From contig CATNEN010000034.1 of the NCBI GenBank assembly GCA_950097015.1, positions 4,030,001 through 4,094,000 of the forward strand: a stretch of DNA of 64,000 nt. Reading direction: 5' to 3'. Below the pieces are notes generated by a model. The model worked only from the letters and a program-made list of their open reading frames with translations, ran no database searches and was not told where the DNA came from. The stretch is from Macrostomum hystrix. Lineage: Eukaryota; Animalia; Platyhelminthes. Of the stretch, positions 32,602 to 41,020 are shown piece by piece. Position 1 is the first letter of the stretch, and every line of letters begins with the position of its first letter. A program made the translations under genes and the position numbers.

Positions 32602-35377
32602 TGCTGCTTTGTCGCTTGATTAATGAATTACTTATTGGACTTAAAACAAAAAAGCTGCTTTTGAAATCGGCAGGCTAAGCTGAAAGATATTTTGTAGAAA
32701 GCACTAATTTAAATGAAAGCAATTAACTAAATTTAATCTCAAAAAGCAAAGCAAATAGACTCTTGATATAAATAACTGAATTTTAATTCTAGTTCTAGTT
32801 TTTGCTTGCTTTCCGTTGGTTTTCTCTACGGATGACAATTCTTAGGCACAGTATAAAACAAAAATTGACTTGTCACTAAAAAAATTATTGCGAATTTAAG
32901 TTGTAAATATGCATAGTGTACAAAAAATCGATTGGAGTTAAAATTATTATTATCCTTACTCTTAAAAGACGACGTTAACACTTTTTAAAAAATTATGAAA
33001 ATTGTTTCACTCTAATTGTAAATTTATAACATTCTTTATTAAAAATGTTAAAAGCTTTATGCAATGCAATATTTGGTAACAGACTATTGTATATCTATGT
33101 TGCATATAAAGTTTTTGTCGTTGTTATGCATTGTAAAGATTTCGTCCAAAAAAACAGTTAGTGCTTCATGTGTAAATATCGTAAGGTATAAGATATTTAC
33201 ATGTCAGCTAATAAGTAAAGCATAATGATAATAAGTAAACTGTGTTAAATATAAGTTCTAGGAATTAAAAAAAACGATGATAAAAGTGTTTATCGTTAAT
33301 TTTTGTGACTATAGAACGCGAATTTGATTTAACAAAAACACAACTTCGTCGAAATTCCGATTGTTAAAATGCCGCTCGCTTTCGTATGTTGAATTCGTGG
33401 GCAGTGCTGTTTACTCTGATTGTCTTAGAGAGTGATGCGTTTTTGGAACATCGTTAAAAACGATGCTTTTAAGCATAGTGAAGTTAAATGGATGAATTAA
33501 GCGCGAATAGAAACAAAAAATATTTCATCTTGTCTTTAAGTAGCTTAAGAAAATTTTAAGAAATGCTCTATGATAAGTATTATTTTTTGCTGGCCTGCTA
33601 AAATTGGCCTGCTACGGACTCGTAGTTGATACAAATGTTAAAGTATATTTTTTTCTTTGCCAAAATCAATTCATTTCCTAAGAGGAATCTTAGGAATCAG
33701 AATCAGGATCCAGAACAGGAATGTATTGGGACTAACTGCGTTTAGTTATTTCGTTCGATTGGATACGAATTGATTTGAATCTTATGACCAAACAGGCAAC
33801 CTTGCCTGATAACCTACTTCTAATTCAATTGTCGTTTGTTTGCTGTTGACGATAGAGTGTAGTGTTTAAGTTTTTACCTAATCATTCTATTCAAAAGCAT
33901 TAAAAAACGGAAAGTACACTAAGATTGAGTAGAGAAGCTGTCGAGCAAATGATTAAACAAAATACTAAACCCAAGACAAAACCGGTTCTTGACGTGCTCG
34001 CGCGCATTTCTATGCTCAGCAATTGCATGCATGTTTAACTTAAGCGAACTTTTGTTGCCTCGAAAAAAATTGACTCTGGAATTTATTTTCACTGTTGCCA
34101 GAAGCACAATAGGTTTAAATTTAGCAAAGTAAATTTATCTAAATCACATCAACAAAATATACAAATATATATTAACTAACGTCTACAGCCTTTTGCGATA
34201 ACGCACGGCAATCAGATCCGACTAGTAGATAACACGGGGCAACTTTCGATGCAAATCAAATGCTTATTAGCTAGCTCATTCTGAGTATAAAAATCTGATT
34301 AATTTTTTATCGGAGAATTTAACTAACGCACGTGTGGGATATTTTCAGCTGAAAATGACGAACAACAGGAATGACAGCCGGCCACAAATCATGCAGCCCA
34401 GGAATAAAATTAACAGATTTCTCAATTTAATGATGCAGAAGGGAACGCAGCAGTCACTGAAAGCAACAAAGTAGGGGGGGGTTGCAAGGCCCTGAAAATG
34501 TGATTTATGAATTAAGAAATTCGACTCGCGAGAATGCTACAAAACAGGAGCTTAGAGAATCGATGCTACTCGTACTTCAGCTAATTATAATAAGTATAGT
34601 TTTAGTTTTAGCAGATCTGTTTTTATCACAGTAACAGTTGAATATTAGCTCCCAATGCATTAACTCGACTAAAAGGAGTCTGCAATGTTTATTTATAAGA
34701 CAGGATGAAAACTCTCTCAGAATCTGAAATTTAGCTGATTATCATCAGAATGTGTCGCGCTACTGGGGTGGGAATATTCTGCTATAACAGCTCTCCGACA
34801 GCTCCCCAGTTGTGACGGAGACGTCAGCGTGGGCAGGTATACCGTCGGTGACTCGCGGGAAATCAATTCCGTTTTCTTAAAAAACCTAGACAAATTGAGA
34901 CGCATTCGGTTTTCGATTCGGCTGGCGCCGGCAGCGCTGAATTCTTTCATTTCATGTCATCGCGTCGCGCGCCGGGAATTATTTTGTCACGCAATTTGAA
35001 CAGGCCGCGGTGGATTCACAACAGGCAATTCGTTGGTTGCTATCCGATTGTTCTCTCAGGAGAGCTTCATTTTGATTGGCTGTTTAAATATTAATTACAG
35101 GGGAAAACTTTTTTTCGGTAAAGAGGCCACTTACTAAAAACTCTGAAGATTGTTGGAACTCATTACAAATTTATTTTACATGCACCGAGCTCTCTTCTGA
35201 GTTAGAGTTTTTTCTGACGAGTTAGAATCTATGCTCGAAAAAGAATCCGGGCACTCCTTAAAAAGCCACGGTCTACTCAGAGCCAGTGTCAACTCAAAGA
35301 TGAGCCATTGTTTACTAAAAATTGAGTTATAGTCTACCTCAATAAAAGTCAAGGGTCTTCTCAAAAAAGAGTCAGGG

Positions 35378-35641
35378 TCTACTCAGAGAAGAGTCAGGGT
35401 CTACTCAGAGAAGAGTCGGGGTCTACTCAGAGAAGAGTCAGGGTCTACTCAGAGAAGAGTCAGGGTCTACTCAGAGAAGAGTCAGGGTCTACTCAGAGAA
35501 GAGTCAGAGTCTACTCAGAGAAGAGTCAGGGTCTACTCAGAGAAGAGTCAGGGTCTACTCAGAGAAGAGTCAGGGTCTACTCAGAGAAGAGTCAGGGTCT
35601 ACTCAGAGAAGAGTCAGGGTCTACTCAGAGAAGAGTCAGGT
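35378..35641. repeat. 22-bp minisatellite (GAGTCAGGGTCTACTCAGAGAA)n
   Basis: About 12 copies upstream of the neuropeptide gene. Confidence 0.95.
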
Positions 35642-36075
35642 TCATGCTTCAAGATTTCAGTTTCCAAGTAGGATCGACTCAAAGTTGTGGTCAATGGTTT
35701 TACTCGAATTTGAAATGCAGCATTGGGTCATACTTGACGCTTCATAACCCAAAGAAAATTTCATTTTTTTACCCTATAAAATTTACATTACCACGAAAAA
35801 CAGTATTATTTGATGCAGTGTAATGGAAAAGCCTGTCCTCCAATCAAGGTAGTCTGAAGGTGAACTCAGTTCGGGATTGGCTCAGTTAAGGCGAGCTCAT
35901 TAAGGATACGTAAATACCTGTCTCTATTGGTGCCTATACCTCTTGGCTTCAGGTAGAAAAGTAAGCCAACATAGCAGATCGGTACGTCACAGCCTGAGAG
36001 CCCCGCACGGTACAGCTACCATCTCTTACTGAGCTCAAAATAATTGGGCCCTGATACGGTGTGCATTCTACTAAA

Positions 36076-37170
36076 ATGAGGCTGCTAATTTCTGGCTGGG
36101 TCTTGGCAGCAACGCTGCTACTGGTTGTCTTGGCCCATAGCAACGCTGCCGCCGAATTCGAGACGTACGATGATGCGAACGAAGAGACGGCCATTGAAGA
36201 CAAAGGATTCGACCGAATTGGAAGTGGACACGGCAAGGGAAGGCCTAAAAGACAGTTGCACAACGGTGGAATGTTTGGCAAGCGACAGTACAACGGTGGC
36301 ATGTTTGGCAAGCGACAGTACAACGGTGGCATGTTTGGGAAGCGACAGTACAACGGTGGCATGTTTGGCAAGCGACAGTACAACGGTGGAATGTTCGGGA
36401 AGCGACAGTACAACGGAGGAATGTTCGGGAAGCGACAGTACAACGGTGGAATGTTTGGCAAGCGACAGTACAACGGTGGACTGTTCGGGAAGCGACAGTA
36501 CAACGGTGGAATGTTTGGCAAGCGACAGTACAACGGTGGAATGTTCGGGAAGCGACAGTACAACGGTGGAATGTTTGGCAAGCGACAGTACAACGGTGGA
36601 ATGTTTGGTAAGCGACAGTACAACGGAGGAATGTTCGGGAAGCGACAGTACAACGGTGGAATGTTCGGGAAGCGACAGTACAACGGAGGAATGTTCGGGA
36701 AGCGACAGTACAACGGTGGAATGTTCGGGAAGCGACAGTACAACGGAGGAATGTTCGGGAAGCGACAGTACAACGGAGGAATGTTCGGGAAGCGACAGTA
36801 CAACGGAGGAATGTTCGGGAAGCGACAGTACAACGGAGGAATGTTTGGCAAGCGACAGTACAACGGAGGAATGTTTGGCAAGCGACAGTACAACGGTGGC
36901 ATGTTTGGCAAGCGACAGTACAACGGAGGAATGTTCGGGAAGCGACAGTACAACGGAGGAATGTTCGGGAAGCGACAGTACAACGGAGGAATGTTTGGCA
37001 AGCGACAGTACAACGGTGGCATGTTTGGCAAGCGACAGTACAACGGAGGAATGTTCGGGAAGCGACAGTACAACGGAGGAATGTTCGGGAAGCGACAGTA
37101 CAACGGAGGAATGTTTGGCAAGCGACAGTACAACGGTGGAATGTTCGGCAAGCGAGAGGACGACAAATAA
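36076..37170 (+). CDS. Prepro-neuropeptide: 28x QYNGGMFamide, 1x QYNGGLFamide, 1x QLHNGGMFamide
   Basis: Signal peptide MRLLISGWVLAATLLLVVLAHSNA, acidic spacer, then 30 units each ending in GKR (amidation Gly plus dibasic site), and an acidic EDDK* tail. Unit variation is almost all at synonymous positions. Confidence 0.95.
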   Translation: MRLLISGWVLAATLLLVVLAHSNAAAEFETYDDANEETAIEDKGFDRIGSGHGKGRPKRQLHNGGMFGKRQYNGGMFGKRQYNGGMFGKRQYNGGMFGKRQYNGGMFGKRQYNGGMFGKRQYNGGMFGKRQYNGGLFGKRQYNGGMFGKRQYNGGMFGKRQYNGGMFGKRQYNGGMFGKRQYNGGMFGKRQYNGGMFGKRQYNGGMFGKRQYNGGMFGKRQYNGGMFGKRQYNGGMFGKRQYNGGMFGKRQYNGGMFGKRQYNGGMFGKRQYNGGMFGKRQYNGGMFGKRQYNGGMFGKRQYNGGMFGKRQYNGGMFGKRQYNGGMFGKRQYNGGMFGKRQYNGGMFGKRQYNGGMFGKREDDK

Positions 37171-39519
37171 GACCTCAGCTACGTAAGCGATTGCAAACAG
37201 AGGACCACTTGCGCGAGGACAGTTTAGCAACCCAGCTTTCTCTGCTGCGAAACGTTTCTTGAATGTGACGAATAGCGTACTATTTTACCTTGGACTATTG
37301 TTTGTGCTCCTGTGGCTCTACACGCAGCTTCGAACTCGGATCCAAACCCGAGATGTCTTAGTGAGCTCTGATGCCTATACTGAGAAGAGCCCTTAGAGGA
37401 AGAAAAATTATTCTTGCGAACATCAAATAAAAACTAGTTTTGTTGTCAACCGCTTTGGTTCAAACGGAAGTTTTCGGGCTATGTCTTTTTTGTCTGACCA
37501 ACTGTACTGATCACTAGCTTGCCTACAATACCAAAAAGGGAGTTTTTTAAAATCCCATAAAAAACTCGGGATTTTACAAAAAATGTACAAGGAAAGTAAA
37601 ACTGCGCTAAATTTTGCCACCATTTAGGACATGCTTGAAGGCTGAGCTACTGCTGCTGGCTGCTGCTGCTGCTGCAAAGTTTTTTAGATAATTATTCAAT
37701 AAACTGTTGAAACCAAATGTTTGACTTTCTAGCCTTAACTTTAGGAGCCATAGCGATTAGAAACACCAACAGCTTCTAGGATATTTTTATACGCCCACAC
37801 ACATGCAGGGTTATTTCTATAAGGCTCATGAATTCTTTACTTAGACTATTAGGGGACTTGCAGTGCGTATGTGCATAAGGAGCCAGAACCCGCTGCAGTG
37901 TAGTAGTAGGATGCGGCCCAATAAACTTTTTTGGTCGATTACTGCATTACCTGTTATAGAGAGTGAAATTTGTGGGGTTAGAGGATGCAGCGAATGCTTT
38001 AAATCGACCTCGTGGCCAGAAAATCTTCAGCCTAAAGAAGTTAGAGAAAAAAAACAGCTAGTCTCTGAGCAGAGCTCAGAACTGGATGGAACAAAAATAC
38101 AGCAAACTGTGAAATAAGTCTCCCTGAGTTGTCAAGAAATAACAAATAATAGACTTGGCATCAGGTGATTCTCATCGTGAGTCCTGTTTTTTACAATTTA
38201 CCGTGCGTCAAAGTCACGCGCCAGTACTTTTACACATAGATATCTAGCCTAGAGAGAATATAGCACGAAATCGACAATTACACGTATTAAACACAAAATT
38301 TCGAAAAAACATTATTTCATAAACATCACCGACATAATGTGATCAGCATGGTGCTACGAAAAGTGGTTCAAAACATGATCTGACTATAAAAATGACTGCA
38401 GTAGAGTTATTTTTTTCGACGGAAATTTCGTTGTATCAATTACAATATATAGACTGTATTTCATAGTTCCAATTGATGCGATTTTAAATACAGCTCATGC
38501 TGCGATTCTAGCTGCGATTTATGCAGTGATTCTAGATACAGTTCCTGCTGCGATTCTAGATGCAGTTCCTGCTGCGATTCTAGATACAATTTAAGCTGTG
38601 ATTCTAGCCTAATGAGGAATTAGTTATTTTCCGCAAGTTCAAAGCCTAGTCAGATAGGTACCGAAAATTAATTCATTATCAACCAACTAAATAAGGGAAA
38701 ATTATTTTGATCGACTGACCGATCCTTATTTAAGAAGCCAAGGACAGTGACAGTCTGCAGCACGCCACACACCAGCAATTAAAATGACAAAAATCTTCAC
38801 AAATTAAGACTATAAAAATTAGAGATCACTCGTAGATTAAAGGAGCACACCTTAGATAATAGTGGCCAAATTTGAGAACATTAAACTGACAGCTGTATTC
38901 GCGTGACACACTGGATAAGATTGACAAGTTGGACAGGACAGACAGAGGTATTGATTCGCGACGCTCATTGTGTGAGCGCTTCGGTACAGTCTCTGACTGC
39001 CAACTGGGGCGTCAATTATATCAGTCTAGAGACCAGGATAATTCACCTCACAGGATGGACTAGAACAGGATGCAGGCACGACTCATATTAAGCTCAGGCC
39101 TTAGTCACCACTTGAAGATAGCTGCTGAAACTCAGCCACTCCCAGTAAACCTAGCAGCAAAAAACTCCGCAGCTAAAAAATATACCGCGTTCATTAGTCA
39201 CTCACTGTAGGCAGTGAATTTTATTTAAGTAGATTTCATATTTTCCTAGGCCTCGATTCGCACTGTTCCGGAAGGGGCGGCAAAGGCAAGGCGAACTTGT
39301 TTGTTTGAAGGCCGCACACTTTTACATCCCAAAAAATCGATAGAGGCGTACTTCAGAAACCAATGCAGCGGTGTGATCTGATACATGGACACTCGGGAGT
39401 TGTCTCTTCACTACAACTGTCTCTTGTCTCTTGCCTGATTCAGTGATTCAGATGTCTGAAAAAATACTCAAAATTATGAGCACATGATATAAAAGCCAGA
39501 CCTTAATTAGAAGAAGTAA

Positions 39520-41020
39520 TTGGAATAGTCGGTCCTGACACTGAAGATGTCAGTGGAATAGTCGGTCCTGAAACTGAAGATGTCAGTGGAATAGTCGGTC
39601 CTGACACTGAAGATGGCAGTGGAATAGTCGGTCCTGACACTGAAGATGTCAGTGGAATAGTCGGTCCTGACACTGAAGATGTCAGTGGAATAGTCGGTCC
39701 TGACACTGAAGATGGCAGTGGAATAGTCGGTCCTGACACTGAAGATGGCAGTGGAATAGTCGGTCCTGACACAGAAGATGTCAGTCGAATAGTCGGTCCT
39801 GACACAGAAGATGTCAGTGGAATAGTCGGTCCTGACACTGAAGATGTCAGTGGAATAGTCGGTCCTGACACAGAAGATGTCAGTGGAATAGTCGGTCCTG
39901 ACACTGAAGATGTCAGTGGAATTGTCGGTCCTGACACTGAAGATGTCAGTCGAATAGTCAGTCCTGACACTGAAGATCGCAGTGGAATAGTCGGTCCTGA
40001 CACTGAAGATGTCAGTGGAATAGTCGGTCCTGACACTGAAGATGTCAGTGGAATTGTCGGTCCTGACACTGAAGATGTCAGTCGAATAGTAAGTCCTGAC
40101 ACTGAAGATCGCAGTGGAATAGTCGGTCCTGACACTGAAGATGTCAGTCGAATAGTCGGTCCTGACACTGAAGATGTCAGTGGAATAGTCGGTCCTGACA
40201 CTGAAGATCGCAGTGGAATAGTCGGTCCTGACAGTGAAGATGTCAGTGGAATAGTCGGTCCTGACACTGAAGATGTCAGTGGAATAGTCGGTCCTGACAC
40301 TGAAGATGTCAGTGGAATAGTCGGTCCTGACACTGAAGATGGCAGTGGAATAGTCGGTCCTGACACTGAAGATGTCAGTCGAATAGTCGGTCCTGACACA
40401 GAAGATGTCAGTGGAATAGTCGGTCCTGACACTGAAGATGTCAGTGGAATAGTCGGTCCTGACACAGAAGATGTCAGTGGAATAGTCGGTCCTGACACTG
40501 AAGATGTCAGTGGAATTGTCGGTCCTGACACTGAAGATGTCAGTCGAATAGTCAGTCCTGACACTGAAGATCGCAGTGGAATAGTCGGTCCTGACACTGA
40601 AGATGTCAGTCGAATAGTCGGTCCTGACACTGAAGATGTCAGTGGAATTGTCGGTCCTGACACTGAAGATGTCAGTCAAATAGTCAGTCCTGACACTGAA
40701 GATCGCAGTGGAATAGTCGGTCCTGACACTGAAGATGTCAGTCGAATAGTCGGTCCTGACACTGAAGATGTCAGTCGAATAGTCAGTCCTGACACTGAAG
40801 ATCGCAGTGGAATAGTCGGTCCTGACACAGAAGATGTCAGTGGAATAGTCGGTCCTGACACAGAAGATGTCAGTGGAATAGTCCGTCCTGACGCTGAAGA
40901 TGGCAGTGGAATAGTCGATCCTGACAGTGAAGATGTCAGTGGAATAGTCGGTCCTGACACAGAGGATGTCAGTGGAATAGTCGGTCCTGACACTGAAGAT
41001 GTCAGTGGAATAGTCGGTTT
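39520..41020. repeat. 33-bp minisatellite (GGAATAGTCGGTCCTGACACTGAAGATGTCAGT)n
   Basis: About 45 copies; each carries an internal inverted repeat CTGACA-N7-TGTCAG. Confidence 0.96.

Follow-up and report, generated by a model that had tools for sequence, protein, structure and literature searches.

A Thirty-Copy Prohormone Gene of the Flatworm Macrostomum hystrix, a Candidate Member of the NLP-10/SIFamide Type

Introduction

Does a 30-bp tandem array in the genome of the flatworm Macrostomum hystrix encode a peptide prohormone, and if it does, to which family of neuropeptides do the products belong? The array lies in a stretch of 64,000 nucleotides (contig CATNEN010000034.1, positions 4,030,001 to 4,094,000), which we call the window and to which all coordinates below refer unless another contig is named. 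It is part of a single open reading frame (ORF) on the forward strand, the subject of this study. An earlier sequence-only reading had taken the repeat to be coding and had proposed that its product, QYNGGMF-amide, may define an undescribed family. We found that the peptide frame is under purifying selection and that the locus is very probably a real prohormone gene. Two further paralogues lie elsewhere in the genome; the three genes have the core [F/Y]-N-G-G-M-F-amide in common and together carry 62 copies. As judged from the sequence of this core, we lean towards regarding the window gene as a flatworm NLP-10/SIFamide-type neuropeptide gene, belonging functionally and evolutionarily with NLP-10 and SIFamide.

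Selection on the Peptide Frame

Because the array is open in five of its six frames, openness alone proves nothing. The changes that distinguish the repeat units are more informative. In the peptide frame, 5 distinct changes were synonymous and 1 was non-synonymous (45 and 1 occurrences, respectively; P 0.0016), the neutral expectation for this frame being 0.20 synonymous. The remaining five frames of the array showed no bias, with 0–2 synonymous changes of 6. As controls we used four other 30-bp arrays of this genome, satellites in which ..GKR or ..KR arises by chance; among their 3–11 distinct changes only 0–3 were synonymous, they lacked a signal peptide, and many of their "processing sites" were broken. 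Because the synonymous bias is specific to one frame and absent from the control satellites, the peptide frame is under purifying selection. The claim that the 30-bp repeat is coding and sits in a prohormone with a signal peptide is borne out. The unit alignment also confirmed that variation is limited to the wobble positions named beforehand (GGT/GGA, GGC/GGA, TTT/TTC, and GGC/GGG/GGT), apart from a single Met to Leu change (ATG to CTG) and the QLH first unit.

Organization of the Precursor and Its Predicted Products

The features of the precursor are collected in table 1. The signal peptide has a positive n-region, a hydrophobic core with a mean Kyte-Doolittle value of up to 2.9, and an end of the A-x-A type (..AHSNA/AAEF, with S-x-A at −3/−1); both the signal peptide and its cleavage site after Ala24 were read by eye from sequence composition, not with a dedicated predictor. 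It stands in the same frame as the repeats, as is proper to this class of precursor. No ATG occurs within the 57 nt 5′ of the start codon, whose context is AAAATGA. The spacer that follows contains 9 Asp/Glu and 6 Lys/Arg residues. According to Tandem Repeats Finder, the array has a period of 30, 29.9 copies, 94% matches, and zero indels. The G-K-R site is intact in 30 of 30 units, and an RPKR site precedes unit 1, which again agrees with the class. Each unit also begins with Gln, so that pyroglutamate and a C-terminal amide, as predicted by the sequence-only reading, are to be expected throughout the array. No cysteine occurs among the 364 residues of the product, and a Pfam search of the precursor returned 0 families at E values up to 10.

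Table 1. Features of the window gene and of its two paralogues.
Feature	Position	Strand	Description and basis
Intact ORF	36076..37170	+	ATG at 36076, TAA at 37168-37170; 364 codons/364 aa
5′ untranslated region, apparent transcript 5′ end	36019..36075	+	Contig starts of three runs
Signal peptide (putative)	36076..36147	+	24 aa, MRLLIS...AHSNA; composition of translated sequence
Acidic spacer	36148..36252	+	35 residues, ending in RPKR cleavage site; translation
First unit	36253..36285	+	11 codons, QLHNGGMFGKR, predicted pQLHNGGMF-amide; translation
Ten-codon units	36286..37155	+	29 units, 28 QYNGGMFGKR and 1 QYNGGLFGKR; translation, repeat analysis
Single QYNGGLFGKR unit	36466-36495	+	Translation
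C-terminal tail and stop	37156..37170	+	EDDK and TAA; translation
AATAAA, likely polyadenylation signal	37426..37431	+	256 nt 3′ of stop; sequence only
Paralogue 1	L033:1854-2543 (G000:C12)	+	229-residue ORF, signal peptide, 18 FNGGMFGKR
Paralogue 2	L034:2440-3063 (G000:C2)	-	207-residue ORF, signal peptide, 13 FNGGMFGKR and 1 FNGGVFGKR

We infer the following course of processing. The signal peptide would be removed by cleavage after Ala24, a prohormone convertase would cut after each KR, and a carboxypeptidase would trim the Lys and Arg; the exposed Gly would then be converted to a C-terminal amide, and the N-terminal Gln would cyclize to pyroglutamate (pGlu, or pQ). The predicted yield of one precursor is 28 pQYNGGMF-NH2, 1 pQYNGGLF-NH2, and 1 pQLHNGGMF-NH2. 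Such processing is feasible because the genome encodes PHM-type Cu2_monooxygen domains and proprotein-convertase P domains. The peptides would presumably be expressed in neurons, released from them via dense-core vesicles, and act on a rhodopsin-type G protein-coupled receptor (GPCR) of the NPFF/SIFamide family.

Two Paralogues in the Same Genome

A degenerate DNA pattern for N-G-G-[IMLF]-F-G-K-R was run over the whole M. hystrix genome, where a protein search is swamped by satellites of about 30 bp. Besides the 30 copies in the window gene, the pattern matched two arrays with a period of 27 nt on other contigs (table 1). Their distinct changes show the same bias as those of the window gene: 5 synonymous and 0 non-synonymous in L033, and 5 and 1, respectively, in L034. 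The tails of both paralogues are devoid of cysteine, and their peptides of Tyr. The signal peptides and spacers of the three paralogues have no evident similarity to one another.

Match to Nematode NLP-10 Peptides

When the 18-copy paralogue was used in a word search of the protein collection, a single match (P0152) was obtained. This protein bears a signal peptide, and the ends of its four peptides are ..MMNGGMF, ..LPFNGGMF, ..IPFNGGMF, and ..MPFNGGMF; G-KR comes after the first three, and G and the stop after the last. Two proteins of the nematode Diploscapter pachys, PAV77688.1 and PAV84654.1, fall into its 90% cluster. The contigs that bear P0152 (L035-L037, from ENA) begin with CAAGTTTGAG, which we take to be the 3′ end of the nematode SL1 spliced leader. 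The called start of P0152 is a TTG inside this apparently SL1-spliced 5′ untranslated region; the real start is probably the ATG giving MLVRFSLLF.., as in the D. pachys entries.

In Caenorhabditis elegans, the peptides NLP-10-1, NLP-10-2, and NLP-10-3 are AIPFNGGMY, STMPFSGGMY, and AAIPFSGGMY, and nlp-10 is a four-peptide gene (PMC11532408). NLP-10 is an NPFF/SIFamide-type ligand of the Gq-coupled receptor NPR-35 (SIFR-1) of this species (PMC7615250; PMC11004728; PMC11532408). The Diploscapter gene is probably the orthologue of nlp-10, to judge from its four-peptide layout and its motif. The FNGGMF-amide of the Macrostomum paralogues agrees with the Diploscapter C-termini at 6 of 6 residues, being identical to the end of three of the peptides, and with NLP-10-1 at 5 of 6, the only difference being Tyr for Phe at the end. 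Thus, the paralogues carry the C-terminal pattern of NLP-10, F-[NS]-G-G-M-[YF]-amide. The window peptide keeps NGGMF-amide, has Tyr in place of the Phe that precedes it, and bears an added Gln that is expected to cyclize. The likeness to nematode NLP-10 (SIFP-1) also extends to the precursor, which is multi-copy, uses G-KR sites, lacks a cysteine domain, and places an aromatic residue at −6 of the peptide.

The arthropod SIFamides provide a second comparison. The Tribolium SIFamide precursor reads ..PPFNGSIFGKR (PMC8557429), and the mature peptide, TYRKPPFNGSIF-amide, follows the scheme F-N-G-x-hydrophobic-F-amide, with 4 of 6 residues identical to FNGGMF. NLP-10 and SIFamide are viewed in published work as one NPFF/SIFamide-type system. 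Spiralian members of this type (nemertean SPDPAGSNLFF-amide, Platynereis ..NMNNLLF-amide, and gastropod ..NLNSLFF-amide) come from the same superphylum as Macrostomum and resemble the window peptide in the Phe-amide end, the hydrophobic position −2, and the Asn at −5; their motif, however, is N-[SN]-L-[LF]-F as against N-G-G-M-F, and their precursors hold two peptides and a two-cysteine tail.

A flatworm receptor of this class is plausible, since a monogenean has been reported to possess one of the SIFa/NPFF type (PMC9645230). A GPCR-acting neuropeptide would be the likeliest function of the window gene, because its core is the C-terminal motif of NLP-10 (SIFP-1) and resembles the arthropod SIFamide ..PPFNGSIF-NH2. 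Considering the motif match to nematode NLP-10 and SIFamide-type peptides, neither of which the sequence-only reading had weighed, and the two FNGGMF-amide paralogues, the suggestion of an undescribed family is not supported at the level of the peptide motif.

Searches in Databases and Literature

Word-based protein searches with the whole precursor and with its first 90 residues gave no matches, and the exact sequence was absent from the collection. An exhaustive phmmer search of 1.84 billion representatives gave 502 matches, the best 150 of which were all unrelated repeat proteins or precursors of other animals aligned through the GKR period. These 150 included NLP-12, EFLGamide, GLWamide, MIP, and a Plectus ..GMMF-amide precursor, none with NGGxFG[KR] repeats. 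The last of these, P0050 (UniRef A0A914W1R3, Plectus sambesii), contains about 8 peptides with a ..PGMMF-amide or ..MGMMF-amide end and may be the nlp-10 counterpart of Plectus or another NLP; it surfaced only through the GKR period. Across 5.8 billion clustered and 1.84 billion representative proteins, NGGxFG[KR] repeat proteins outside this genome were confined to the nematode cluster. The direct searches turned up no such repeats, and the nematode precursor P0152 was reached via the paralogue.

The nearest neighbours of the precursor in a protein language model were MIP, allatostatin-A, tachykinin, FLP-1, and pro-TRH, all of them multi-copy neuropeptide precursors. With scores below 0.9, they may serve as a lead to the general class and to nothing narrower.

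Motif searches of the literature (NGGMF, GGMFamide, NGGLF, etc.), whose scope did not extend to the main flatworm neuropeptide-precursor (npp) catalogues, found nothing relevant, the sole GGMFG match being a crinoid calcitonin. Papers on MFamide peptides in flatworms and spiralians concerned SALMFamides only. The planarian prohormone paper, including its 8 supplements, contained none of NGGM, GGMF, and GLFGKR, and the motif was absent from the main text of the neuropeptidome paper on nemerteans, brachiopods, and phoronids. The literature searched contained neither a flatworm peptide of the SIFamide/NLP-10 type nor the exact window peptide. A pattern scan of metagenomes matched 55 contigs, one of which had two matches, separated by 2.8 kb, and the other 54 a single one. 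We inspected the dozen contexts with the most G-K/R-K/R sites; none was precursor-like, and they were taken as chance.

Evidence for Transcription

Contigs of four small public runs were mapped to the repeat-free 5′ flank of the array (35641-36290); the array and the 3′ end lay outside this test. The runs carry no RNA label on record, so that transcription is read from the placement of contigs, which give strand and ends only with uncertainty. Contigs from three runs start at 36019, 36035, and 36037, that is, within 18 nt of one another and 39–57 nt before the ATG. From there each follows the genome sequence collinearly as far as the first repeat units, with zero joints and zero loose 5′ letters. 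The 378 nt upstream (35641-36018) had zero coverage in all four runs. Although the runs comprise only 50–184 million letters and the genome is 220 Mb, the depth over the 5′ stretch was 11–72, and in run X5 the repeat words reached depths of hundreds to more than 1000.

Because the contigs share a start near the ATG, leave the upstream region uncovered, and are deep in such small runs, a pattern unlike that of genomic DNA, we infer that the gene is transcribed and that its transcript is abundant and without an intron at the 5′ end.

At position 36232, the X1 and X3 contigs carry A for G (Gly53Ser), a change within the spacer, which therefore tolerates change. These contigs are otherwise identical over 222–256 nt, and the 272-nt piece from X5 has two other letters. 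The near-identity of the X1, X3, and X5 contigs indicates that the three source organisms belong to the same or very close species.

Neighbouring Sequences and a Second Multi-Copy Prohormone

Two non-coding tandem arrays flank the gene. One (22 bp × 14, 35332-35640) ends some 380 nt short of the transcript start, and the other (33 bp × 45.7, 39510-41018) lies about 2.3 kb downstream of the gene. A cyclic AMP response element (CRE) half-site, CGTCA, is found at 35985-35989 within GTACGTCAC, about 30–50 nt upstream of the apparent transcript start, possibly by chance; there is no TATA box at −30 of that start.

Minisatellites of about 30 bp that are open in several frames are abundant in this genome (L002, L014, L017, L025, and most of L004-L026). 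Chance readings resembling GKR occur in L014, L017, L025, and L002 (e.g., QWVRVSEGKR and VRDWDLMGKR), some of them as ..KRR. Such minisatellites lack a signal peptide, and variation disrupts their apparent sites; they are a trap for repeat-based peptide hunts in the M. hystrix genome.

The genome also contains a second multi-copy prohormone of 394 aa (L003:1243-2427, + strand; G000:C37, about 4026700-4027884). Its signal peptide is followed by SIFSGVL-amide and about 29 copies of (A/E)(M/I)YSGLLGKR, which correspond to xMYSGLL-amide, and its synonymous bias is 11/6. The orthologue in Macrostomum lignano is PAA49395.1 (partial), which shares the signal peptide and has identical peptides, with diverged spacers and 63% identity overall. 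A buccalin-like or allatostatin-A-like affinity of this gene is a guess only. It follows the same plan as the window gene, namely a signal peptide, a spacer, about 30 ten-codon G-KR units, and a synonymous bias; the peptides, however, are unrelated (SGLL-amide in the former), so that the likeness is one of architecture only.

Discussion

Although the core motif ties the window gene to NLP-10 and SIFamide, several observations weigh against this assignment. The link rests on a motif of 5–6 residues, and short amidated peptides can converge. NLP-10 precursors have four copies and the window gene has 30. NLP-10 peptides are 9–17 residues long with Pro before the Phe, whereas those of the window gene have 7–8 residues and the Macrostomum family as a whole has peptides of 6–8 residues without the 3–10 residue N-terminal extension of NLP-10. 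Unlike NLP-10, the window peptide carries a pyroGlu cap and Tyr for Phe, and its host is a flatworm (Spiralia) and not a member of the Ecdysozoa. The SIFamide side fares no better in architecture. Arthropod and spiralian SIFamide/FFamide precursors contain one or two peptides followed by a two-cysteine tail (PMC8557429). In arthropods, a single 12-residue copy stands right after the signal peptide and precedes an associated peptide with two cysteines. In the window gene, by contrast, a 35-residue spacer and then 30 copies follow the signal peptide, and there is no associated peptide with two cysteines. Moreover, NGGMF is closer to the ecdysozoan forms than to the spiralian ones, which is odd for a spiralian orthologue; the closeness to the ecdysozoan form could reflect either ancestral retention or convergence. 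Finally, the protein sets of other species covered by our searches held no orthologue of the window gene.

These objections are the substance of the strongest alternative, in which a lineage-specific Macrostomum family has merely converged on the NLP-10/SIFamide motif and acts on an unrelated receptor, either another GPCR or a peptide-gated DEG/ENaC channel, much as the sequence-only reading had supposed in proposing an undescribed system. The confinement of NGGxFG[KR] repeats outside this genome to the nematode cluster, the lack of NGGM or GGMF from planarian prohormone lists, the architecture unlike that of SIFamide and NLP-10 precursors, and the different peptides of other spiralians all speak for it. 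Nevertheless, three peptides of one nematode precursor end in the entire six-residue FNGGMF-amide, which also shares 5 of 6 residues with a peptide that has a proven receptor of the NPFF/SIFamide family. The absence from protein sets is itself weak evidence, since highly repeated transcripts assemble poorly. On balance, we consider convergence unlikely, though an explanation that has to be taken seriously. A non-neural gland product that uses the prohormone pathway, such as a pheromone or a seminal-fluid, adhesive, or defensive peptide, seems improbable to us. The very high copy number and the deep repeat words in one run would suit bulk secretion; on the other hand, the motif matches neuronal peptides of nematodes, and the genome is rich in multi-copy amidated precursors, including the xMYSGLL-amide gene conserved in M. 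lignano, as is typical of a neuropeptidome.

Membership of another aromatic-amide family has very little probability. The pGlu, Tyr, Gly-Gly, and aromatic amide of the oyster peptide Cragi-CCK2 (pEFDYGGGRW-amide) give a loose resemblance to the CCK/sulfakinin type, but the window peptide has no acidic residue before Tyr and no Arg or Asp before its last residue (it ends in M-F), and the paralogues lack Tyr. Likewise, starfish S1 and S2 are loosely similar and SALMFamide precursors are also multi-copy, which might suggest a SALMFamide/kisspeptin type (GFNSALMF-amide), but the Leu/Phe-X-Phe-amide ending is absent and Gly stands at −3 (G-M-F-amide). CCK/sulfakinin, SALMFamide, and TRH identities were rejected on their defining motifs. 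Least probable of all is a non-coding 30-bp minisatellite that is open in this frame by accident. The genome is indeed full of such arrays, some of which read GKR (L014, L017, and L025), and the array at this locus is open in five frames of six; but the synonymous bias is confined to the peptide frame and absent in the control satellites, the array continues the frame of the ATG and signal peptide, 30 of 30 processing sites are intact, the coverage is transcript-like, and the same peptide core is encoded by two paralogues whose period is different (27 nt). For practical purposes, the minisatellite explanation is refuted.

The preferred assignment, an NLP-10/SIFamide-type neuropeptide gene, invites a bolder view that we regard as doubtful. 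FNGGMF-amide may be an ancestral protostome core kept letter for letter, the N-S-L-F-F type of annelids, molluscs, and nemerteans being derived. Within the three genes and their 62 copies, the window gene would then be a variant capped with pyroGlu-Tyr and resistant to exopeptidases, whose target may be a second receptor (or a peptide-gated channel), or whose range of action may be longer.

The window gene stands out for its extreme copy number and its pGlu-Tyr cap, and the core of its family is an exact match to the nematode motif. If the link to NLP-10/SIFamide is true, the Platyhelminthes would join the NPFF/SIFamide system, and the nematode motif would be older than the Ecdysozoa. If the link fails, the three genes would represent a genus-restricted orphan system of the kind that is common among flatworm peptides. 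The expansion to three genes and 62 copies, with one capped variant, offers a clean case for the evolution of copy number and capping. Elsewhere, SIFamide/NLP-10 signalling controls feeding, locomotion, and arousal, and Macrostomum is a tractable model in which RNAi and transgenesis are available.

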